From the NCBI RefSeq assembly GCF_030028105.1, contig NC_092390.1, positions 16,214,507-16,278,506 of the forward strand: a stretch of 64,000 nucleotides of DNA, in the 5' to 3' direction. A program made the translations under genes and the position numbers. The stretch is from Mobula birostris. Its lineage: Eukaryota. The notes under the pieces were generated by a model. That model did not search any database. It was given only the letters and a program-made list of their open reading frames with translations, and was not told the DNA's origin. Shown here in pieces: positions 8,021-52,169 of this stretch. Positions within the stretch are counted from its first letter, which is position 1. Each line of letters begins with the position of its first letter.

Positions 8021-8126
8021 GCTGACTTTCACTTAAGTTTTATAGAATCTTTGCCATTACTCATTCTCTATGTCCTGCTAAACAGTTACATTGAGTGAGC
8101 CTTTAACTTGTCTTTGCTTCCCTCAG

Positions 8127-8286
8127 AAAATGATGCTGAGCTTCCATGAAGAGCAGCAAGGATTGCCAGAAAACTTCCTCGCCACCTTTCCCTCGCTAAT
8201 TAAAGTGGATGTCCACTCAAAGGTGACAGACCCAAGTGTGGCTAAAAGTATGATGGGCTGTTTGCTTTCTTCCTTAAAAGCCAATG
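8127..8286 (+). CDS. OGA: OGA penultimate exon: [53 protein letters not shown]
   Basis: cctcag| acceptor and AATG|gtaagg donor, 160 nt. Matches human [48 protein letters not shown]. Confidence 0.95.
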
Positions 8287-8553
8287 GTAAGGGCCAGTGT
8301 CTCCTTTACTGCAACTTCTCTGTAGGTGGTTCAGTAATCTCCTGGGTATTCATTGTTTCCTGGGGCAGGCTGTTTGCTAAGTTGGTATAATTTAAAAATT
8401 TCAAATAGAATTAAAGTAGTAAGTTACTGTGTAATTCATTACTTCACACTATTTCAATGTTATTGTGTAATACTGTCGTCTGACTTTAAATACCAGTTTT
8501 CTTAAGGAAGCTAGGAACCCCAAAAAGGTAGGAAGAGAGCGGTGAGCTGGGTG

Positions 8554-9480
8554 CAACACACATCAAAGTTGCTGGTGAACGCAGCAGGCCAGGCAGCATC
8601 TCTAGGAAGAGGTATAGTCGACGTTTCGGGCCGAGACCCCTCGTCAGGACTAACTGAAGGAAGAGCTAGTAAGAGATTTGAAAGGGGAAGGGGGAGATCC
8701 AAAATGACAGGAGAAGACAGGAGGGTGAGGGATGGAGCCAAGAGCTGGGCAGGTGATTGGCAAAAGGGACATGAGAGGATCATAGGACAGGAGGCCTAGG
8801 GAGAAGGAAAAAGAGGAGGGGGGGGAACCCAGAGGATGGGCAAGGGGTATAGTGAGAGGGAGAAAAAGGAAAGAGAGAAAGAATGTGTGTGTATATAAAA
8901 TAATGGATGGGGTACGAGGAGGAGGTGGGGCAATAGCGGAAGTTAGAGAAGTCAATGTTCATGCCGTCAGGTAGGAGGCTACCCAGACGGAATATAAGGT
9001 GGTATTCCTCCAGCCTGAGTGTGGCTTCATCTTTACAGTAGAGGAGGCTGTGGATAGACATAACAGAATGGGAAAGGGATGTGGAATTAAAATGTGTGGC
9101 CACTGGGAAATCCTGCTTTCTCTGGTGGACAGAGCGTAGGTGTTCAGCAAAACGATCTCCCAGTCTGCATCGGGTCTCGCCAATATATAGAAGGCCACAT
9201 CGGGAGCACCAGACGCAGTATATCACCCCAGCCGACTCACAGGTGAAGTGTCGCCTCACCTGGAAGGACTGTCTGGGGCCCTGAATGGTGGTGAGGGAGG
9301 AAGTGTAAGGGCATGTGTAGCACTTGTTCCGCTTACAAGGATAAGTGCCAGGAGGGAGATCAGTGGGGAGGGATGGTGGGGACGAATGGACAAGGGAGTC
9401 GCATAGGGAGCGATCCCTGCGGAATGCAGAGAGAGGGTGGAGGGAAAGATGTGCTTAGTGGTGGGATCCCGTTGGAGGTG
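8554..9480 (-). mobile_element. Penelope-like element, same family, GIY-YIG + 3' region, inserted in a V-SINE in the OGA last intron
   Basis: ORF 8780-9259 is the GIY-YIG domain, highly similar to the copy at 27080-27477. Imperfect flanking repeat (GAGCTGGGTG / GAACTGGGTG). Confidence 0.9.
8615..8652 (-). ncRNA. Minimal type I hammerhead ribozyme, canonical
   Basis: Minus strand reads UAGUC CUGACGA G GGGU-CUCG-GCCC GAA ACGU C/ GACUA: stem I UAGUC/GACUA, core CUGANGA..GAAA, stem II with tetraloop, palindromic ACGU stem III, GUC cleavage triplet. Confidence 0.85.
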
Positions 9481-11885
9481 GAACTGGGTGGCTTGTTTAG
9501 TGCTGGGGCCTATTTGTTGTATGTTGAAAATAGAAACATGTGCAATATTTCTGTGTGGATTTCCCCTGGTTGCTCCAGTTTCCTCCGATCATCAAAAGAT
9601 GTACCATTTGGTAGGTTAGTTGGTCATTGTAAATTGTCCCAGGATTGGGCTCGGATTAAGTTGGGGGATTACTGGGCAGCATGGCTCCAAGGGCCGATTC
9701 TGCACTGCATGTCAATGAATAGTTTATCATTATCTGTTGCTAGAGCTATCAGACCAAAATTCATTCAAAGTTTCAGAGTACATTTATTATCAAAGTTTCT
9801 ATGCAGAATATAATCCTGTACAAAGCCGCAAAGCCATTTAAACCCATCAAAACATCAAACACCTAATTTGCGAGAAAAGAACAAATCATGGAAATCGCAA
9901 ATAACACAGAATATTGAACATCAAATCACGGTCCACAAATGACAGCTACCAAGTCAGTTCAGCTTAGTGACCGCAGGCCTCAGCTGTAGAGCCACTTCTG
10001 CACTGAATAGCCTTGATCAAATTGCGCAAGAAACAAACACATGGAACATGAACTGCAGATTCCTCCAAAAATGAGTTCACAACTGCGGAGCATGTTCAGT
10101 GCTGAGGACATTAAATATCAAACTGCAGAATCCCATAGCCATGAGCTGCGCCAAGGCAATCGAATGGGCCACCTTCCTCTGGCAGTGGCGAATGGGAGAT
10201 TGCACCAAACCTCCGCTCATCTTCAGCTCTTGTTCTCGTTACAATCTTGCTCAACACTTCAATTGGTGAGGGGTAATAGAGCCACCCATTTCATCTTCCA
10301 CCATTGGGAAACGATGGCTGCACTCTCCACTCTCAATCCAATCAAGATGTAAATTATTGGATGTGACCAGTCGCAGTTCAGGAGAAGCATATTTAAAAGC
10401 AGAAGTAATGTTTTGAGCTGTTGGTCGCGTCGGTCACTGGCGCCATCTTGTATCTTCACATGCATTTCTGACAAAGTGGTTGAAATTATGGACTTCAGTT
10501 ATGTTGGCTCCTGTTATCTATGTAACCTTTAATACTTTGAATCCTGTAGAGAGTTTAGCTGAGATGCTTAAACATGCACTTTGTTTTGTGTTTAGGAACT
10601 CGGGCAGTGCCTGCAGCTTCCTGGTTCATAATCTAGTAGCTTATCTTGTTTGTGGTAAACAACGATTTTTTTTAGTTAATGTTAATTTAAATCATTACCC
10701 AATCTTTAGTTGCATGGCTTTTATTCAAACATTAAATATCAGGACCGCAGTCATTGGTTTACACTGTTTTAAATGCAAGGTCAATTCCTTTGGAAGTAAC
10801 AACATTGGGTTAAACTGATAACTAATACCACTGGCAGAGAAAAATTGATTCTCTCCTGCAACAAATGGTAATGACCAGTGCGTGGCTGACAGCTGACATT
10901 TCAGGGTGACAGTCTGTCAGTAAGAGTGTTCATTCTCCGCAATTCAAACCCCCCCGGCATTCTCTCTTCTCCCCTCCCCCTTTGGGCAGAAGATGCATAA
11001 GCCTGTGAATACATACCACCAGGCTTGAGGTCGAGTTCTGTGCTGCTGTTATCAGATTCTTGAACGGACATCTTGTACTTTAAGACTGACCCTTGGCCTC
11101 TCAATCTTCCTCGTTATGATCTTGCACTTTATCAGTTAGCTGCACTACACCTTTTTGGTAGCTTTTACACTATTCTCCATTGTTGTTTTACCTTTAATCT
11201 AGTTGAATGCATGTATATTCTGATCTGTATGAACAGTATGCAAGACAAGTATTTCACTATCAGTACATGTGACAATAATAAGCCCACACAAAAGCTAGGA
11301 ATCCATAAATCAATGGGCAATGGGTCTTGTGTGTCCCTAAGACAGTGTGGGGGTGGGGGGGGGGGAACTCTGGTCCTGTCACAGTCGATACAAGGATGAA
11401 CCTGCATGCACTTACATAAAATTTATTTAGCACACTTTACATAGTGAAACGTCAAGACACTTCACGAGACATTACACGGTTAAATCTAAGGTGTTGACAC
11501 AACTAACCTGAGTGCCAGTAGAGTAGTGGTTAACACAACACCTAGGTTCTATTCCTGTTGCTGCTAGTAAGGAGTTTGTGCATTCTCCCCGTGACCGTGT
11601 GGATTCCCTCTGGGTGCTCTGGTTTCCTCCCAGTCCAAAGACATACTGGTTGGTAGGTGAACTGGTCATTCTAAACTGTCTCATGACTAGGCTAGGGTTA
11701 AATCAGGGGTTGCTGGGTGGCACAGGTCATCGGGCCAGAACGGCCTGTCCCACACTGGCTATTAAATGGTGTCACTGAAGCCTTCTGAGGTCAGCAGGGG
11801 TGAGCGGTTCGTCTCCTGCATGTGAATGTTGGTGATGCCATTTTCCACTGCCAGCTGTAAACACTATTGTTTTCTTCCCATTCAG

Positions 11886-12022
11886 GATCTCGAGGAGCGT
11901 TCTGTGAAGTAAGACCCAACGACAGGCGTGGTTTGGAGTTCTACAGCAAACTGGGCTTCCTGGAGTTGGCCAGGATGGAGGGATTTCCAAAAGAGATGTT
12001 GGTGCTGGGAAGGAATTTGTAA
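11886..12022 (+). CDS. OGA: OGA terminal coding exon: [45 protein letters not shown]
   Basis: ttcccattcag| acceptor, 137 nt ending in TAA. Matches the human C-terminus [39 protein letters not shown]. Confidence 0.95.
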
Positions 12023-18504: not shown

Positions 18505-18880
18505 AGCTCCGCCACACCATCCCATCACACCTGGGGTCAGATACAGAGTGAAGCTCTTGACACTGTCCCATTACACACCCCTGGGGTCAGACACAGTGAA
18601 GCTCCCTCTATGCTGTCCCATCACACATTACTGACATCAGACACAGAGTGAAGCTCCCTCTGTACTATCCCATCACACACCCCTGGGGTCAGACACTGAA
18701 TGAAGTTCATCCCATCTCTCACTCTTGGAGTTAAATACAGAGTTAAACTCCTTTTGAACAATTCCATCACACAATCCCAGGCAGGGACAGCATAGGTTAG
18801 ACACAATAAAGCTCTTGCATAGCATCCCATCAAACACTCCAGGACATGCGCAACACAGGTTTGGAAGATACACTTCTCCA
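18505..18880. repeat. Degenerate ~50-bp minisatellite in the last POLL intron
   Basis: At least 4 units of CACACCCCTGGGGTCAGACACAGAGTGAAGCTCCCTCT..GTCCCATCA, decaying rightwards. Confidence 0.8.
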
Positions 18881-20552: not shown

Positions 20553-22129
20553 CTAGAGAACACAGAATGATCCCAATGGCTCCATCAATTCCACACCTTG
20601 TTTCCCTCCATGCTGCTCCTCCAGTCCCAGCTGTACAAAATTCCCTCTTGCTCATTCCCTGCTCTGACACCACAAATTTTACCTGTGCTATGCACTGCAT
20701 GCATTTTCCATGATATTTTACTAGCTTATTTATGGTAGTATTTGGTTTACGTGTGTGTGAGAGATCTGTTTTGTGAGTTATGCTGTCTTTCGTTTGGTTA
20801 CATACCGTATATGTACAGTCAGTTGATATTAATTTGAACTTGATTACCTTCAGCATCTTCCCTGGTCTGAGGATCACATTTGCCTCAGTGTGTTAGTGCT
20901 ACGGCTGGACATGGCTGACAAATCCTGATAACCTCTCTAATGATTCTGGTGAGATGGTGGTGTGCTCAGATGTAACAGATTCTACGGGCCAACCAAACCT
21001 GTCATTGTCTTTTTAAAATGTATTTGCTATGATCGCAAGAACCTGCTGGACATGAAGAAGTTAAAGTACTGCAAGTCGACCCCATCAGTGAGTTGCTCGT
21101 TGGTGGAGAAACTGAAGGAGCTGGACTTGGTGCGGATCGCGCTGCTGTCTGCATGAAGGTGGTGATTGTCTTGGTTGCTTTTCTTGTGATCGTAAGACCC
21201 TGTTGGGCATTGGTAATGTGGAGTGCTGCAGGTCTCCTTCACCGTTTTATTGGTGAACGGCGGGGGAGCCGTGTGGCCTTGGTTGTAGCAAGGACTAGGT
21301 CTCAAACTGCGGTGTCACCTGTTTGTGGCTGCCCAGGAGAGAGGCGTCAGAGTCCGTACGTTCCACCAAAGGCAGTGTGGCACAGCGTCCATACTTGTTT
21401 CGGTGCTGCCCTTCAGCGTTCACTCGGCAGAAGACAAGACGTACTGTGTTTGACTGCAGACTGCTGCAACATTCACAGACTCAGGGACCTGAACTATGTT
21501 TTTTTATGTATAACCGTGTTTTCCCACTGCCTTCTATGTGTTACATTTGCCTTGTTGTGTGAATGGCTGTTGATACTGTGTTTTGCACCACGGCCCCAGA
21601 GTAACACTGTTCCTTTTGTCTGTATTCATGGGTATTCCATCTATGGTTGAATTACAGCTGAACTGGAATTTGAATTTAAACCGTGCAATGGTCAGACAGT
21701 GTAAGCTGGCCTTTGTCAGCTCCCCAAAGCGTGGATGGGGGTGCAGATGCTGCTGCAAGTACCTTTAGCTTTGTCACACGTACATCGAACATACAGTGAA
21801 CTGCATCGTTTGCGTCAGTAACCATTAGTACTGTCAGGCTTCTGACCCCAACATAGCATGCCCATAACTTACCAACTTTAACCCATACAGCTTTGGAAGG
21901 TGGGAGGAAACTGGAGTACCCACAGTCACAGGAAGAATGTACAAGTTCCTTACAGACAGTGGTGGCAGTTGAACCCTAATCGCTGGTTCTTTAAAGCAGT
22001 ACAGTAACTTTTACTTTATGCTCGCTCAGTGGATATGTAATGATCTGATCTGTATACGGTATCTCGGTACACGAGACAGTAATGGACCAACAGCAATTCC
22101 AATCGGGAAATGAGGGTAAGTTGTTAGAG

Positions 22130-22231
22130 CAACACACATCAAAGTCGCTGGTGAACACAGCATCTCTAGGAAGAGGTACAGTTGATGTTTCGGGCTGAGA
22201 CCCTTCGTCATCTGCAGATTTCCTCGTGTGT
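22130..22231. mobile_element. 102-bp inverted + direct Penelope-like mini-insertion
   Basis: Begins CAACACACATC (inverted arm), ends with the tail GCAGATTTCCTCGTGTGT. Perfect 14-bp TSD GTAAGTTGTTAGAG (22116-22129, 22232-22245). Confidence 0.88.
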
Positions 22232-26114: not shown

Positions 26115-27866
26115 TCAGGAAGGTTGGATGTCCAGTCCTTATATACTTCCATCCCCCATCAGGAAGGTCTCAAAGCTCTACACTTCTTTCTGGATTCCAG
26201 ACCTAATCAGTTCCCCTCTACCACCACTCTGCTCCGTCTATCGGAATTAGTCCTTACTCTTAATAATTTCTCCTTTGGCTCCTCCCACTTCCTCCAAACT
26301 AAAGGTGTAGCTATGGGCACCCGTATGGGTCCTAGCTATGCCTGCCTTTTTGTTGGGTTTGTGGAACAATCTATGTTCCGTGCCTATTCTGGTATCTGTC
26401 CCCCACTTTTCCTTCGCTACATCGACGACTGCATTGGCGCTGCTTCCTGCATGCACGCAGAACTCGTTGACTTTATTAACTTTGCCTCCAACTTTCACCC
26501 TGCCCTCAAGTTTACCTGGTCCATTTCCGACACCTCCCTTTCTAGATCTTTCTGTCGCTGTCTCTGGAGACAGCTTATCCACTGATGTCTACTATAAGCC
26601 ACTGACTCTCACAGCTATCTGGACTATTCTTCTTCTCACCCTGTCTCTTGCAAAAACGCCATCCCCTTCTCACAATTCCTCCGTCTCCGCCGCATCTGCT
26701 CTCAGGATGAGGCTTTTCATTCTAGGACGAGGGAGATGTCTTCCTTTTTTAAAGAAAGGGGCTTCCCTTCCTCCACTATCAACTCTGCTCTTAAACACAT
26801 CTCCCCCATTTCACGTACATCTGCTCTCACTCCATCCTCCCGCCACCCCACTAGGAATAGGGTTCCCCTGGTCCTCACCTACCACCCCACCAGCCTCCGA
26901 ACATATTATTCTCCGTAACTTCCGCCACCTCCAACGGGATCCCACCACTAAGCACATCTTTTCCTCCTCCCCCCCCCCCCCCACATTCCGCAGGGATCGC
27001 TCCCTACGCAACTCCCTTGTCCATTCGTCCCCCCCATCCCTCCCCACTGATCTCCCTCCTGGCACTTATCCGTGTAAGCGGAACAAGTGCTACACATGCC
27101 CTTACACTTCCTCCCTCACCACCATTCAGGGCCCCAAACAGTCCTTCCAGGTGAGGCGACACTTCACCTGTGAGTCGGCTGGGGTGATATACTGCGTCCG
27201 GTGCTCCCGATGTGGCCTTTTATATATTGGCGAGACCCGACGCAGACTGGGAGACCGCTTTGCTGAACATCTACGCTCTGTCCGCCAGAGAAAGCAGGAT
27301 CTCCCAGTGGCCACACATTTTAATTCCACATTCCATTCCCATTCTGACATGTCTATCCACGGCCTCCTCTACTGTAAAGATGAAGCCACACTCAGGTTGG
27401 AGGAACAACACCTTATATTCCGTCTGGGTAGCCTCCAACCTGATGGCATGAACATCGACTTCTCTAACTTCCGCTAATGCCCCACCTCCTCCTTGTACCC
27501 CATCTGTTACTTATTTTTATACACACATTCTTTCTCTCACTCTCCTTTTTCTCCCTCTGTCCCTCTGAATATACCCCTTGCCCATCCTCTGGGCCCCCCC
27601 CTTGTCTTTCTTCCCGGACCTCCTGTCCCATGATCCTCTCGTATCCCTTTTGCCAATCACCTGTCCAGCTCTTGGCTCCATCCCACCCCCTCCTGTCTTC
27701 TCCTATCATTTTGGATCTCCCCCTCCCCCTCCAACTTTCAAATCCCTTACTCACTCTTCCTTCAGTTAGTCCTGACGAAGGGTCTCGGCCTGAAACATCG
27801 ACTGTACCTCTTCCTACAGATGCTGCCTGGCCTGCTGCGTTCACCAGCAACTTTTATGTGTGTTGC
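26115..27866 (+). mobile_element. Penelope-like retroelement (Neptune-type), 5'-truncated, frameshifted: RT + GIY-YIG endonuclease + 3' region with hammerhead
   Basis: RT motifs DVQSLYTSIPH, GVAMGTRMGPSYA, LRYIDD. Cys linker PCKRNKCYTC. Endonuclease VIYCVRCSRCGLLYIGET..RFAEH. Perfect 14-bp TSD TTGCTTTCAGTATA (26101-26114, 27867-27880). Confidence 0.93.
27767..27804 (+). ncRNA. Hammerhead motif of the long Penelope-like copy, stem III mutated (ACAU)
   Basis: TAGTC CTGACGA A GGGTCTCGGCCT GAAACATC GACTG. The G-to-A change breaks the ACGU palindrome. Confidence 0.7.
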
Positions 27867-28549: not shown

Positions 28550-31460
28550 CAGCACAGAAACAGGCCTTTTGGCCCATCTAGTCCATGCTGAACCATTTAA
28601 ACTGCCTCATCCCATTGACCTGCACCCAGTCCATAGCCTTCCATTCTCCTACCATCCATGTACCTGTCCAAACCTCTCTTAAATGTTGAAATCAAGCTTG
28701 CATGCACCACTTGTGTTGGCAGCTTGTTTCATACTTTCACAACCCTCTGAGTAAAGAAGTTTCCCTTAAGTGTTTCACCTTTCATCCTTTACCCGCATGA
28801 CCTCTAGTTGTAATCTCACCCAGCCTCAGTAGAAAAAGCCTGCTTGCATTTACCCTATCTATACCCCTCATAATTTTGTATACCTCTATCATATCTTCTC
28901 TCAATCCCCTATACTCGAGGGAATAAAGTTCTAACTATTCAATCTTTCCCTATAACTCAAGTCCTCAAGTCCTGGCAACATCCTTGTAAATTTTATCTGC
29001 ACTCTTTCAATCTTATGTCTTTCCTGTAGGTTGGTGACCAAGACAGCACACAATACTCCAAATTACGTGTCACCAACATTTTACACAACTTCAACATAAC
29101 ATCCCATCTCCTGTACTCAATAAACACACATCAAAGTTGCTGGTGAACGCAGCAGGCCAGGCAGCATCTCTAGGAAGAGGTACAGTCGACGTTTCAGGCC
29201 GAGACCGTTCATCCTGACGAAGGGTCTCGGCCTGAAACGTCGACTGTACCTCTTCCTAGAGATGCTGCCTGGCCTGCTGTGTTCACCAGCAACTTTGATG
29301 TGTGTTGCCTGAATTTCCAGCATCTGCAGATTTCCTCGTGTTTGCGTCCTGTACTCAATACTTTGATTTATGAAGGCCAATGTACCAAAAGCTTTCTTTA
29401 TGACCCTATCTACATGTGACGTCACTTTCCATGAATTATGGATCTGTAGTCACAGGTCCCTCTGTTCCACTGCACTCCTCAGTGCCCTACCGTTCACTGT
29501 GTAAGACCTACCCAGGTTGGTCTTCCCAAAGTGCCACACCTCAGACGTGACTGCATTAAACTCCATCTGCCATTTTCCAGCCCATTTTCCCAGCTGGTTC
29601 AGTTTCCGCTGCAAGCTTTGATAGTCTTCCTCGCTGTCCACTACACCCACAATCTTGGTGTCATCCGCAAATTTGATGGTTCAGTTAACCACATTATCAT
29701 CCAGATCATTGATATAGATGACAAACAACAAGGACCCAGCACCGATCCCTGTAGCACTGCACTAGTCACAGGCCTCCAGTCAGAGAAGCAGCCATCTAGT
29801 ACCACTCTCTGGCTTCTTCTGCAAAGCCAATCTCTAATCCAATTTACCACCTCATCTTGAATGTCGAGCAACTGCACCTTCTTGATCAGCCTCCCAGGTG
29901 GGACCTTGTCAAATGCTTTGCTATACTCCCTGTAGACAACATCCACTGCTTTGCCTTCATCAACTTTCTGGGCACCTTCTCCGAAAAACTCCATAAGATT
30001 GGTTAGACACAACCTACCACGCATAAAGCCGACTATCCCTAATGAGTCCTTGTCTATCCAAATACTCACATATCCAGTCCCTTAGAATACTTTATAATAA
30101 CTTCACCACTACTGATGTATGGCTCACCAGCCTACAATTTCCTGGTTTATTCTTAGAGCTGACAGCAAAACAACATTAGCTTACCCTGTAGCACCTGTCG
30201 CTAAGGATGATTTAAATATCTCTGCTAGCATCACTGCAATTTCGACACTTGCCTCTCTCAGGGTCTGAGAGAGCACCTGGTCAGGTCCTGGGGTGTCCAC
30301 CCTAATTTGCCTCAAGAGAACAACTACGTCCTCCTGTGTAATCTGTAGTCCAGGATTTCGCTGCTGCTTTGCCTCACTTCTATAGGCTCTGTGCTATTTC
30401 CCGAGTAAATACAGATGCGAAAAAATTCAATTAAGATCTCCTGCACCTCGTTTGGCTCCACACATGGATTACCACCCTGATCTTCCACAGGACCAATTTT
30501 GTCCCTTGCTATCCTTTCGCTCTTAACATATCTGTAGAATTCCTTAGCATTCTCCTTCACCTTGTCTGCTAGAACAACCTTCTATCTTCTTTTAGCCTTC
30601 CTGATTTCTTTCTTAGATGTTCCCTTGCACTTCTTATACCGCATTTGTTCCTACCTGCCTACACCTGCTATGCGCCTCCTTTGTTTTCCTTAACCAGGGC
30701 CTCAATAGCTCTTGAAAACCAAGATTCCTTAAGCCTATTATCCTTGCCTTTCATTCTGACAGACACATACGAGCTCTGTACTCTCAAAGTCTCAATTTTG
30801 AAGGCCTCCCACTTACCAAGTACACCTTTGCCAGGAAACAACCTGTCCCAATTCACACTTGCCAGTTCCTTTCTGATACCATCAAAATTTCTCCAATTTA
30901 GAATCTTAAATCGAGGTCTAGACCTATCCCTCTCCATAATTACCTTGAAATTAATGGCATTATGATCACTGGATGCAAAGTGTCACCCACCCTGTCTCAT
31001 TCCCTAATAGAAGATGAAGTATTGGACACTCTCTCATCGAAACTTCTATGTACTGATTAAGGAAATTTTCCTGAACGCAGTATGGGACTCCCAGTCAATA
31101 TGTGGAAAATTAAAATCACCTACTATCACAACCTTATGTTTCTTGCAACAGTCTGCGATCTCTCTACAAACTTGCTCCTTTAAGTCCTGCGGACCTTTGA
31201 GTGTCTATAATATGGCCCCATTAACGTCGTCATAGCTTTCTTATTCCTCAGTTCCACCCATAAAGCCTCATTAGACGAGTTCTCCAGTCTACCTTGACTG
31301 AGCACTACCATGACATTTTCCCTGACTAGTAATGCCAGCCCTCCCCCTTTACTCTCTCTCGTTGTATCACGTCTAAAACAGTGGAACCCTGGAATATTGA
31401 GCTGCCAGTCCAGCCCCTCCCGCAACCAAGCCTCACTGAACCTGAGCACATCTGCCTTTC
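28550..31460 (-). mobile_element. Long decayed CR1-type LINE (endonuclease to RT to 3' end)
   Basis: GFMRGRLCLTNLMEFF..VDVVY..SKAFDKVP..VLQGSVLGP; KFADDTK region; CR1 3' end near 28550. Confidence 0.9.
29123..29346. mobile_element. Fold-back (inverted + direct) non-autonomous Penelope-like 3' fragment with hammerhead core, inserted into a CR1
   Basis: About 83-bp near-perfect inverted arms. Core CTGACGA at 29214-29220 and GAAACGTC at 29234-29241. Perfect 14-bp TSD TCCTGTACTCAATA (29109-29122, 29347-29360). Confidence 0.9.
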
Positions 31461-33828: not shown

Positions 33829-34250
33829 TAAACACAAGAGATCCTGCAGATGCTGGAAATCCAGAGCAACACGCACAAAATGGGAAAACGCGGCAGGTCA
33901 GGCAGCATCCATGGAAGGAAATGAACAGTTGACTTTTCTGGCCAAGACCTTCCTTCAGGACTGGAAAAGAATGGGGGAAGAAGGCAGAATAAAAAGGTGG
34001 GGGGAGCGGAGGGAGGATAGTTAGAAGGTGATGTGAAGCCAGATACGTGGGGAGGCAAAGGGCTAGAGAGGAAAGAATCTGATAGAAGAGGAGAGTGGGC
34101 CACTGGAGAAAGAGGGGGGGGGGACCCAGGGAGATGTGATAGGCGGGTGAGGAGAGGTAAGAGGCCGGAGTGCAGAATAGGAGAAGAGGGGAAGGGGAAA
34201 GAAAGCTATTTTTACTGGACGGAGAAATCGATATTCATGCCATCAGAATC
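33829..34250 (-). mobile_element. Older Penelope-like 3' fragment (purine-rich 3' region, degenerate hammerhead)
   Basis: Same tail and body, ending at the end of the GIY-YIG coding region (GATATTCATGCCATCAG). Confidence 0.7.
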
Positions 34251-39255: not shown

Positions 39256-42015
39256 CTGCAGAGAGGCAAGAAAGGCAGCAAGGATTGTAAAAACCCAGTT
39301 GCACTGTGTGAGAGGCGCTGACACCATTTGCAATGAGCTGGGACTGCAGTACTTGTGGACCTGAAAGGACAGCGGTAACCAGTGATCAGAGGTCACAAGA
39401 CGAGAAGGCAGAAAATGCCACTCCAGCCTGGCTTCCCTCGCCCAGAGTTGTCACTACCTGGAACAAGCTACTCAAAAGGATAGTGGAGTCAGATTATAAA
39501 CAAGAGATTCTGCAGATGCTGGAATTCTTCAGCAACATACTCAAAATGCTGGAGGAACTCAGCAAGTCAGGCAGCATCTATGGAGGGGAGTAGAACAGTC
39601 GACATTTCAGGCCGAGACCCTCCATCAGGACTAGAAAGGAAGGGGGCAAGAGCCAGCATATGTAAGTGAGGGGCAGGGAAGGATTACAAGCTGGCAGGTG
39701 ATAGGTGAAATCAGGTGAGGGGTGAGTGGGTGGGTGAAGGACTGTATTAGGTTAGTGGGCCTCCTATCCAGAGGTTGGCACTAATGATCAGGAATCTGTT
39801 CAAATCCCACCACAGCAGCCAGAGAATTTAAATAAATCTGGAATAAAGAGCAAGATCACAAAACTACTGAGAGATACAGAAATGCATCTGGCTTATTAGT
39901 GTCTTCAGGAACAAAATCTGCGTTTGTAACTAAACCTGCAAGAAAATGAATCTCAGAGTAGTAAATGGTAGTATATACATACTTTGATAATAAATTCTAC
40001 TTTGACTTTGTTTCCCACCCCCTCCACCCACTTTGCAGCTTAAAACATGGTTGTTTCTCACTTTCCCAGTTCTGAGGAAGGGGCCAGGCACATTTACTCT
40101 CTTTCTCTTTCTGTAGATGCCGCCTGCCCTGCCAGGAGTGCCATGCGTTTTCTGTTTTTATTTTAACACAAGTGAGTCGTTCAAGAGTACATAGGGACAG
40201 CAGTAAATGCCAGTTTGCCAGTGATGGCACATGCCATGAGCAATTAAACAAAAAGCACATTTTGAAAGGTTGACACAGGAGATTCTGCAGATCTTGAGCC
40301 ACACACACAAAATACTGGAGGGACTCAGCAGGTCAGACAGGAGGAAGATAAAAGCTGAGGTTCTAAATACTAACGATTGGCTTTATTTGTCACATGTGCA
40401 TTGAAACATGCAGTAACATATGTCATTCGCATCAATGACCAACACTGTCTGAGGACAGCCTTCAAGTGTTGCCATGCTTCCAGCGCTGACATAGCACGCC
40501 CACAACCTACTAACCTTAACCCGTATGTCTTTGACTGTGAGAGGAAACTGGAGCATTTGGAGGAAGCCCACAAGTCACGAGGAGAACATGCAAACTCCTT
40601 AAAGACAGCAGTTTTAATTGAACTGGGGTCATTGGCGCTGTAGAGCGTTGTGCTAACTGACAAGTTTTCTGGGATGAGACCCTTCATGCAGATTGCCTGA
40701 CTTTGCTGAGCTCCTCCAGCATTTTGTGTGTTGCTTTTGAAAGGCTGTACACTCGAACAGATGACTTTCTCAGAGACAGAGGTGGTGGCATCCGTTAGTC
40801 TTGCGAGACCATGGACAGGCACAATAACCTGAACAGGCTGAAGGCACCTGCTGCTCTCTGGTGCCCAGTAAACTTCGGTGCAGTGATTTTTCTTTGTTCA
40901 GCAGAGCAGACTCTGCTGTGAGTCACCCGTAAAAAAGCTCCCACTTGCTCCAGGCACCAGGTGTAAAAAAAAGTTATCGAACATTACCAAAGAAAACTTC
41001 AGCGGCAGGTTGACTTGAGCTTCTTAACTGAGAACATGGATGACTGAATAGAGGTCGATAAGAACGTGTAAAGAATTAATTTGTCGACTCACAGACAACA
41101 GAGAATTTATGACAAGCCTTCTGCGTCAGTGCCAGGCAACAAGGTAGTGTAACACTTTACATCACCCACTGTATGGAATTTGCACGTTCTCCTCGTGACA
41201 ACGTGCATTCCCTCTGGGTGCTCTGCTTCCAAAAACATTTGGGTGAGGGTCAGTAAGTTGTGGACTTGCTATGATGGCAGTCAGTAGATACCTGTGAGCT
41301 GCCCCCAGCACATCCCGGTATTGCGCTGGTAGTTGACGCAAATGACGCAGATGTTTCGACGTACATGTGACAAATACAGATAATCTTTAATCTGATAATC
41401 TGTACTTAGTACTTAGCCCTGTAACTCTGCAGATCACAGCACTTCAAGCTCCTATGAAAGTTGCAAAACAGAACAGCACGTATTCTGAATTGTTAATACA
41501 GCGGTGTAACAAAACACCGTAGCCAGTTTGTGCACAATATAAACAGAACTGTGGCAAAAGCAGTCTGTAATAAATACACACAGTCTCTAGTTTACAGTGG
41601 TTTTAAAGTTCACACAGTCGGGGTGTGGATACTGAATATTAAGAGCTGGCCAGAGTGGACATGCAGAAGTTGTTCCCAGTAGCGAGACAGTCTGGGACCA
41701 GAAGGCATAACCTCAAAATAGAAAGATTCAGAATACAGTAGAAGGATATCCCTTTAGAACAGATGAGAAGGAACTTCTTTGGCCAGAGAGTGGTGAATCT
41801 GTGAAATTCATTGCCACAGACAGCTGTGGAAGCCAAGTCATTGGGCATATTTATAGCAGAGGTTGATAGGTACTAGCAAGGGTGTCAAAGGTTACAGGGA
41901 TAAACAGTTGAAAGGGAAAATAAATTAGGCAAGATCGAATGACAGAGCAGACTTGATGGGCTGAATGGCTTACTTCTGCTCCTATGTCTTAAGGCGAAGA
42001 TCACGGCTAGCTTAC

Positions 42016-50190: not shown

Positions 50191-50905
50191 ATAATGGAGT
50201 CTATGTATTGTTTTAAACTGTATATTGTTTGTGGTTCTTAAAATAGAGAATTACTCTTAATTCTTTCCCCTTGTTATACCAGTTCTCTATCTTTCCAAGT
50301 ACTCCCATTATCAACTACTGCACATTCTAGTACAGAAATGGAAAAGTATTTTGGTGAGACCTGCTTGTACATCTAAGAAAGGATGTGCTGGCATTTGAGA
50401 GGGTACTGAGGAGGTCACAAGAATGATCACGGGAATAAAAGGGTTAATATAAGAGGAGCATTTGATGGCTGTAGGCCGGTACTTGCTGGAATTTAGAAGA
50501 ATGAGTGGGGAATCTTACTGAAACCTATCAAATATTGAAAGGCCTAGAGTGGATGTAGAGAGGATGTTTCCTATGGTGGGTGAGTTCAGGACCAGAGGGC
50601 ACAGCCTCAGAATAGACAACTGTCTCTTTAAAACAGAGATGAGGAGGAATTTCTTTAGGTGGAAGGTGGTCAATCTGAAATTCATTGCCACTGGCAGCTG
50701 TGCAGGCCAAGTCATTGGATATATTTAAAGCAAAGGTTGATAATTACTAAGGGCATTAGAGGTTATGAGTAGAAGGGAGAAGGTGCATAGTGTTGGTCTC
50801 TGCACCTTGTGTTAGAGTGTTATTTCAGCACGGTAACAGGCCCTGTCACCTCAACAAGCCTGCACCGCCCAATTACACCTGTGTGACCAATAATATACTA
50901 ACCTG

Positions 50906-51768
50906 CAACACACATCAAAGTCGCTGGTGAACGCAGCAGGCCAGGCAGCATCTCTAGGAAGAGGTACAGTCGATGTTTTGGGCCGAGACCCTTCGTCAGG
51001 ACTAACTGAAGGAAGAGCTAGTAAGAGATTTGAAAGTGGGAGGGGGAGGGGGAGATCCAAAATGATAGGAGAAGATGGAGGGGGAGGGATGGAGCCAAGA
51101 GCTGGACAGGTGATTGGCAAAAGGGATACGAGAGGATCATGGGACAGGAGGCCCAGGGAGAAAGAAAAGGGGGAGGGGGGAAGCCCAGAGGATGGGCAAG
51201 GGGTATAGTGAGAGGGACAGAGGGAGAAAAAGGAGAGAGAGAAAAAGAATGTGTGTATAAAAATAAATAACGGATGGGGTACGAGGGGGAGGTGGGGCAT
51301 TAGTGGAAGTTTGAGAAGTCAATATTACTCCCCCTTGTATCCCATCCGTTACTTATTTATACCACCTCCCCTTCGTGCCCCATCCATTATTTATTTATAT
51401 ACACAGATTCTTTTTCTCTCTCTCCTTTTTCTCCCTCTGTCCCTCTCACTATACCCCTTGCCCCTTTTCTTTCTCCCTGGGCCTCCTGTCCCATGATCCT
51501 CTCATATTCCCTTTTGCCAATCACCTGTCCAGCTCTTGGCTCCATCCCTCCCCCTCCTGTCTTCTCCTATCATTTTGGATCTCCCCCTCTCCCCCCAACT
51601 TTCAAATCTCTTACCATCTCTTCTTTCAGTTAGTTCTGACGAAGGGTCTCGGCCCGAAACGTTGACTGTACCTCTTCCTAGAGATGCTGCCTGGCCTGCT
51701 GTATTCACCAGCAACTTTGATGTGTGTTGCTTGAAATTCCAGCATCTGCAGATTTCCTCGTGTTTGCA
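50906..51768. mobile_element. Large fold-back Penelope-like 3' composite (about 400-bp arms) inserted into a V-SINE in DPCD intron 2
   Basis: Left arm is the minus copy and right arm the plus copy of the same 3' region. TSD AATATACT(A/G)ACCTG (50892-50905, 51769-51782). Hammerhead motifs at 50967-51004 (-, G12A-type mutation) and 51631-51668 (+). Confidence 0.9.
51631..51668 (+). ncRNA. Hammerhead motif with intact core and GUU triplet, sense to DPCD
   Basis: TAGTT CTGACGA A GGGTCTCGGCCC GAAACGTT GACTG. Stem I is retained through G-U pairs. Confidence 0.65.
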
Positions 51769-52169
51769 AATATACTGACCTGTACGTCTTTTGAATGTGG
51801 GAGGAAACAGGGGCACTTGGACAAAACCCACGTGGCCATGGGGTGAATGTAGAAACTCCTTACAGACAGCAGTGGGGATTGAACCCCGATCTTACAGCTG
51901 GTCCTGTCAGCTATGCGACTGTGCTGTGGTGTTGTGGTTACGGGAGTGATGTCATAGAGGCTGTCACTGTCTCAATAGTTACCTTTGTTCCTGTCTGCTC
52001 GGTAACACTTCATTACAGAATTAAACTCAGACACCATATTCAATCCAGATTAGGGCACTACGGAATACATACAGAGCCTGTATATGCATAGCCCATGTTT
52101 TACTGCACATTTTCTAATGGCTTCCATAGAATGTTGCATTTCCATTCACTTTAAGACCTTTGCTTGTAG

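Follow-up and report, generated by a model that had tools for sequence, protein, structure and literature searches.

[quoted passage not shown] They lie in the terminal region of elements with reverse transcriptase (RT) and GIY-YIG domains and occur as thousands of mostly solitary, truncated copies, sometimes in close pairs on opposite strands (PMC4209133). In vitro, their monomers have been found to be inactive and their dimers weakly active (PMC4209133; review). The min-HHRs of PLEs are also the subject of Lünse, Weinberg and Breaker (RNA Biol 14:1499), as cited in PMC6765202. Another example is the anole Poseidon element, a vertebrate PLE whose ribozyme lies upstream of a pair of neighbouring reverse-transcription start sites, to which its optional tail of 30-40 nt has been attributed (PMC11167929, 2024). 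In this system, cleavage of the ribozyme required the protein of the element, ribozyme mutants were without effect on insertion in vitro, reads ending at the cut site were not found, and the PLE protein was reported to cleave and extend both DNA strands (PMC11167929).

The window analysed here (the whole stretch of DNA, 64 kb in length) carries a motif of this kind at 8615-8652 on the minus strand, within an element fragment hereafter called copy A (Table 1). We read it as a minimal type I hammerhead of the sort found in the terminal repeats of PLEs, with a probability of about 0.88. The initial annotation had taken minimal dimeric hammerheads to be established for PLEs, and the architecture at copy A does agree with the published min-HHR: both are of the open-ended type I, with a 5-bp helix I, the extra base, G10.1-C11.1 and no loop III, and the motif in the window likewise lies in the terminal region of its element (PMC4209133). 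Helix II has 4 bp and a tetraloop in copy A, whereas it has 7-8 bp in the Schistosoma families (PMC4209133). As in the anole Poseidon, the ribozyme stands upstream of two 3' ends that differ by an optional tail; helix II is separated from the insertion ends by about 86 and 124 nt in the present family, a spacing comparable to the 111-118 nt reported for the Poseidon start site (PMC11167929). The start codon of the Anolis carolinensis Poseidon ORF falls at the start of helix II (PMC11167929), whereas no ORF begins in or just past the motif of copy A, where an ATG 25 nt downstream is followed by a stop after 16 codons.

Two other systems have been compared. In newt satellite 2 and the avocado sunblotch viroid, helix III of the hammerheads is, like that of the PLE motif, too weak for the monomer, and the active form consists of two copies with an extended common helix III (Forster et al., 1988, as cited in PMC4209133 and a review). 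These hammerheads differ from copy A by a helix III of 1-2 bp with a small loop, by helix I and II loops engaged in tertiary contacts, and by their setting, which is either a tandem satellite or a circular RNA. The non-LTR retrozymes of animals, on the other hand, are non-autonomous relatives of PLEs; their type I hammerheads are akin to the terminal repeats of PLEs and, unlike copy A, these retrozymes form tandem arrays that yield circular RNAs (PMC7229834; bioRxiv 10.64898/2026.07.22.740005). The window holds only two tandem arrays, both unrelated and neither bearing the motif, and copy A was rejected as a non-LTR retrozyme because there is no tandem array of hammerhead units in the window. 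A 52-nt tandem repeat at 18517-18705 (3.7 copies) is unrelated to the hammerhead family.

The hammerhead motif and its host element

Read on the minus strand from 8652 to 8615, the motif is UAGUC-CUGACGA-G-GGGU(CUCG)GCCC-GAA-ACGU-C/GACUA, in which the slash marks the predicted cleavage site, at the 8620/8619 boundary. The hammerhead core is complete (C3-A9, G12-A14, A15.1, U16.1 and C17), helix I is formed by five Watson-Crick pairs, and helix II by G-C, G-C, G-C and U-G pairs, the 10.1-11.1 pair being that of G 8639 with C 8628. The structural features of the min-HHR are all found: CUGANGA, GAA, A15.1/U16.1, an H17 that is not G, an unpaired base following A9 and preceding G10.1, a G10.1-C11.1 pair to close helix II, and 15.2-16.2 positions that form a palindrome without a loop III. 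The three CpGs of the motif are all intact. These letters bear out the canonical core, the 5-bp stem I, the 4-bp stem II and the palindromic ACGU of the initial annotation; what its structure omitted is the unpaired G 8640, which must stay unpaired given a helix II of 4 bp. The alternative register of helix II has three G-C pairs around a loop of seven bases.

Chance is excluded as the origin of the motif. A min-HHR descriptor (helix I of at least 4 bp, an optional bulge, G10.1-C11.1, palindromic 15.2/16.2 and H17) matched the window only at 8615-8652(-) and 51631-51668(+), and it found 0 matches in 1,130 simulated 64-kb windows of the same dinucleotide make-up (72 Mb); similarly, the pattern CTGANGA..GAAACGTC gave 2 matches in the window and 0 in 100 shuffles. 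No hammerhead family of Rfam (type I, type III, HH9, HH10 or type II) was matched in the whole window at the gathering score, nor was there a hammerhead match over 8500-8750 at E values up to 10. This miss is read here as a limit of the models, in which the motif escapes because its helix III is not closed, and not as evidence against the motif.

The host of the motif has been compared with its sister at 26925-27866(+), with which copy A shares 90% identity over 950 nt. Pfam places GIY-YIG domains at equivalent positions of the two copies (E 2.4e-4 and 4.9e-4) and an RVT_1 fragment directly upstream in the sister copy (E 3.5e-5), all of them slightly under the curated cut-offs. In a protein atlas, the neighbours of the C-terminal half of the ORF are eukaryotic GIY-YIG clusters (0.96-0.97), and a phmmer search of the ORF against PDB sequences gave no meaningful match. 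An RT followed by GIY-YIG is the defining order of endonuclease-bearing PLEs. This order, with the GIY-YIG at the C terminus, is that seen in the family, and the host is classed as an endonuclease-bearing PLE. The assignment of the ribozyme to a PLE in the initial annotation stands in the same way, with a GIY-YIG ORF upstream of the motif and an RT fragment in the sister copy.

The native stop of the copy A ORF (at about 8936) is mutated, so that the frame reads on, and the ribozyme starts some 290 nt past this stop, as placed by homology with the sister copy. From the motif to the 3' end there are 65 nt in copy A, which is tail-less and ends in ...GTGTGTTGC at 8553, and about 100 nt to the tailed end of other copies. 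Contigs from four public runs show most family members running past 8553 into the tail and also upstream past 9481, where copy A is 5'-truncated; a second direct repeat (pLTR) is absent from copy A because of this truncation. A possible 7-nt target-site duplication, CTGGGTG, is seen at 8547-8553 and 9484-9490.

Table 1. Positions in the window of the hammerhead motifs, the PLE copies that bear them and the neighbouring exons.
Feature	Position	Strand	Basis or remark
Copy A, PLE fragment of 0.93 kb, 5'-truncated	8553-9481	-	BLAST, contig loose ends
Hammerhead motif of copy A	8615-8652	-	Fully canonical
Helix I, 5' strand UAGUC	8652-8648	-	Sequence
Core CUGACGA	8647-8641	-	Sequence
Unpaired G	8640	-	Sequence
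Helix II, GGGU / GCCC	8639-8636 / 8631-8628	-	Sequence
Helix II loop CUCG	8635-8632	-	Sequence
GAA	8627-8625	-	Sequence
Helix III palindrome ACGU, loop-less	8624-8621	-	Sequence
C17	8620	-	Sequence
Helix I, 3' strand GACUA	8619-8615	-	Sequence
GIY-YIG domain remnant	9002-9229	-	Pfam; within copy A ORF 8780-9259
Sister element	26124-27866	+	Longer than copy A; RVT_1, GIY-YIG and hammerhead
RVT_1 fragment, sister copy	26124-26585	+	Pfam; adjacent ORF upstream of GIY-YIG ORF
Sister ORF, 379 codons, C-terminal GIY-YIG	26338-27477	+	Ends ...FSNFR*
Sister hammerhead	27767-27804	+	Core intact; ACAU for ACGU; G.U at 10.1-11.1
Head-to-head inverted insertion, two 5'-truncated copies	29123-29345		Arms 29123-29213, 29216-29306
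Right-arm motif	29209-29246		Core boxes 29214-29241 kept; helix I 5' strand lost at inversion junction
Second head-to-head inverted pair	50905-51767		Arms about 50905-51326, 51328-51730; tail to 51767
Second intact motif	51631-51668	+	Passes descriptor; GUU triplet, unpaired A
Penultimate coding exon, OGA	8124-8287	+	AG/GT borders; human O-GlcNAcase 818-871, E 2.5e-23
Last coding exon, OGA	11886-12022	+	Human O-GlcNAcase 873-916 and stop, E 1.8e-16

Proposed dimeric cleavage and folding energies

In the published model, which by analogy may apply to the family of copy A, cleavage depends on a dimer. Helix III consists of the palindrome ACGU only, and a single copy therefore cannot close it. 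In an active, tandemly arranged element, as drawn from the literature, the transcript would carry two motifs; the ACGU of one copy would pair with that of the other and their helix I strands would be swapped, giving a double hammerhead in which two catalytic centres would flank the shared helix and cut after GUC. Such cleavage would probably be slow and would probably need help from chaperones or from the protein that the element encodes; its effect would be to release the element RNA from a longer transcript.

Folding energies were calculated with nearest-neighbour models (RNAfold and RNAcofold) for the copy A 38-mer and three relatives. The double hammerhead is computed at -17.7 kcal/mol against -18.4 for two open monomers, the inactive monomer fold in which the core GACG pairs with CGUC at 2 x -13.2 = -26.4 kcal/mol, and an extended duplex of two copies at -34.7 kcal/mol. 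The double hammerhead is thus not the minimum-energy form in these models, which ignore the tertiary contacts of the core. A non-minimum active fold is usual for hammerhead cores, and for this reason the energies decide nothing on the dimer model; as modelled values, they agree with the low activity that has been reported and with the need for protein in the anole element. Regarding the inactive hairpin, N7 is C in the subfamily of copy A, so that the core GACG (within 8641-8647) can pair with CGUC at positions 15.2 to 17 (within 8620-8624); this pairing lengthens helix I and is the predicted minimum-energy fold of the monomer. It is not conserved, because N7 is U or A in copies of the older subfamily.

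A single RNA copy might instead cleave on its own, shaped by the (dimeric) protein of the element and not by RNA-RNA dimerisation through ACGU. This has been suggested by the anole Poseidon, in which a transcript with one ribozyme remained uncleaved alone and was cleaved once the protein was added, even when this protein was endonuclease-dead (PMC11167929); moreover, the 4-bp intermolecular helix III of copy A brings no net energy gain. However, two RNAs bound by a protein dimer would also be compatible with the anole experiment, and the loop-less ACGU has no means of closing helix III inside a single strand. In addition, PLE motifs conserve the palindrome at 15.2-16.2 (PMC4209133), and for other PLE ribozymes cleavage has been obtained with dimeric constructs but not with monomers (PMC4209133; review). 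Cleavage by a single, protein-shaped copy is therefore held to be rather unlikely, and dimer-dependent cleavage remains the preferred model.

Family copies, 3' ends and inverted insertions

A BLAST search with the surrounding sequence finds 16 family copies in the window, that is, copy A and 15 relatives, in line with the earlier count of more than a dozen in 64 kb. Apart from the four copies whose motifs are listed in Table 1, the other 12 have been truncated or have decayed, and the three CpGs of GAAACGUCGAC account for much of this damage. Among ten aligned copies, 88.9% of cells pair in register, compared with 43% or less when the alignment is slid, and the 10.1-11.1 pair is G.U in 4 of the 10. 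No compensatory change was found in helices I and II of these ten copies, and the window consequently gives no covariation evidence either way. Two copies of the older subfamily, at 39591-39638 and 33921-33968 (minus), have G in place of A9 (CUGAUGG and CUGAAGG), which may be a shared change of the lineage or independent decay. No copy in the window alignment starts at the 5' end of the predicted cleavage product.

The similarity between the old and young subfamilies is 0.78 over the hammerhead and 0.75 over the downstream sequence, and falls to 0.60 over the 100 nt upstream, which mildly supports a constraint on the motif and the downstream sequence at the level of the family. Since the conserved block spans from the motif to the 3' end and not the motif alone, the likeness to a hammerhead could be thought fortuitous, with the sequence conserved for some other purpose such as protein binding (at the initiation of reverse transcription) or a promoter in the terminal repeat, and both the absence of covariation among the ten copies and the low published activity in vitro (PMC4209133) would fit with it. 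Nevertheless, this explanation is very improbable: the descriptor is silent in the 72 Mb of simulated sequence, the same architecture has been reported with different primary sequences, and with compensatory changes, in PLEs from flatworms to reptiles (PMC4209133), and C3/G8 mutants of the anole PLE lose cleavage, which the double mutant restores (PMC11167929). A genuine min-HHR is the reading retained here.

Relative to the family majority (contigs from the four runs), 2 of the 38 motif bases of copy A differ among the differences listed: the majority has GACUG for the GACUA of copy A, at 8615, and an unpaired A for G at 8640. This divergence is about equal to that of the rest of the copy, as neutral drift would predict, and the intactness of the motif thus needs no selection. 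The initial annotation had called copy A the best-preserved member; it is indeed fully canonical, but the motif at 51631-51668 is intact as well, and the preservation appears to reflect chance, not selection.

In the alignment, the copies are truncated at the 5' end to varying extents, and their 3' ends fall into two classes, which differ by a tail of about 40 nt: four are tail-less (...GTGTGTTGC, copy A included) and nine are tailed (...CGTGTTTGC). Inner ends lie at 8553, 27866, 50904 and 22129, and outer ends at 29345, 51767, 16393 and others. Both alternative 3' ends close with a similar GTGT(G)TTGC motif, and such ends may mark two reverse-transcription start sites; the inner 3' end falls within a small stem-loop, GCAAC...GUUGC.

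Two pairs of copies are arranged head to head. In the pair at 29123-29345, the arms are 91 nt long, 97% complementary and separated by a 2-nt spacer, only the right arm has a tail (to 29345), and a 14-nt target-site duplication, TCCTGTACTCAATA, is found at 29109-29122 and 29347-29360. The two arms of this pair meet within the hammerhead core, at G5, rather than where the ribozyme would cut, and a transcript of the pair would form a near-perfect hairpin of 90 bp. In the second pair (50905-51767), the arms are about 420 nt and meet near 51327, again with a tail in one arm only; the target-site duplication has 12 nt, AATATACT[A/G]ACC, at 50892-50903 and 51769-51780 (11 of 12 bases), and the hammerhead of the left arm is broken (G12 to A, ACAU). 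With its own target-site duplication on both sides, each inverted pair can be taken as a single insertion event. An optional tail and inverted pairs of this kind are typical of PLEs, and they fit what has been reported for the anole Poseidon, with its own tail and its cleavage and extension of both DNA strands (PMC11167929).

Copy A in the last OGA intron

The two exons that flank copy A were compared one at a time with human O-GlcNAcase. Both match it on the plus strand, so that copy A lies antisense in the last intron of OGA, as had been annotated, and the OGA pre-mRNA holds only the non-catalytic complement of the ribozyme. The sequencing evidence consists of contigs from four public runs labelled 'RNA?', which give no RNA ends, strand or expression level. 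Over the exon at 8124-8287, the contig depth is 5-100x that of the flanks, and spliced contigs extend past this exon. The last intron (8288-11885) is covered by contigs throughout, in runs that behave like RNA data, at a depth of about 20-117 in run X1 compared with about 2,100 for the exon; this coverage is compatible with OGA transcripts that are unspliced or keep the intron.

In a second organism, contigs pass from the unique flanking sequence into the element at the junction seen for copy A and cover 24-25 nt of it, an overlap below the 31-nt bridging rule. This suggests that the insertion of copy A is common to two species, and it is probably older than the split of the two species in the read sets. 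An intact motif in an old, shared insertion would be explained if the host had co-opted copy A and selection had kept it, either for the processing of an antisense transcript or for regulation of the last OGA intron, and the three CpGs of the motif have all remained intact. However, the evidence that the insertion is shared stays under the bridging rule, the motif has diverged from the family majority at a rate like that of the rest of the copy, the flanking ORF has decayed, and copy A has no partner in cis: the nearest copy on the same strand (22129-22210) is 13.5 kb away and broken. Co-option has for these reasons only a slight chance of being right. No promoter is visible for copy A. Taken together, the lack of a cis partner, the missing 5' part and the decayed ORF make a function at this locus unlikely; most likely, copy A is an inert neutral fossil whose ribozyme has survived by chance.

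As judged from its sequence, copy A belongs to a class already known, the minimal hammerheads of PLEs, to which it adds an example from a further vertebrate genome. This class has been catalogued since 2014 with thousands of copies per genome, and copy A alone matters little. [quoted passage not shown]
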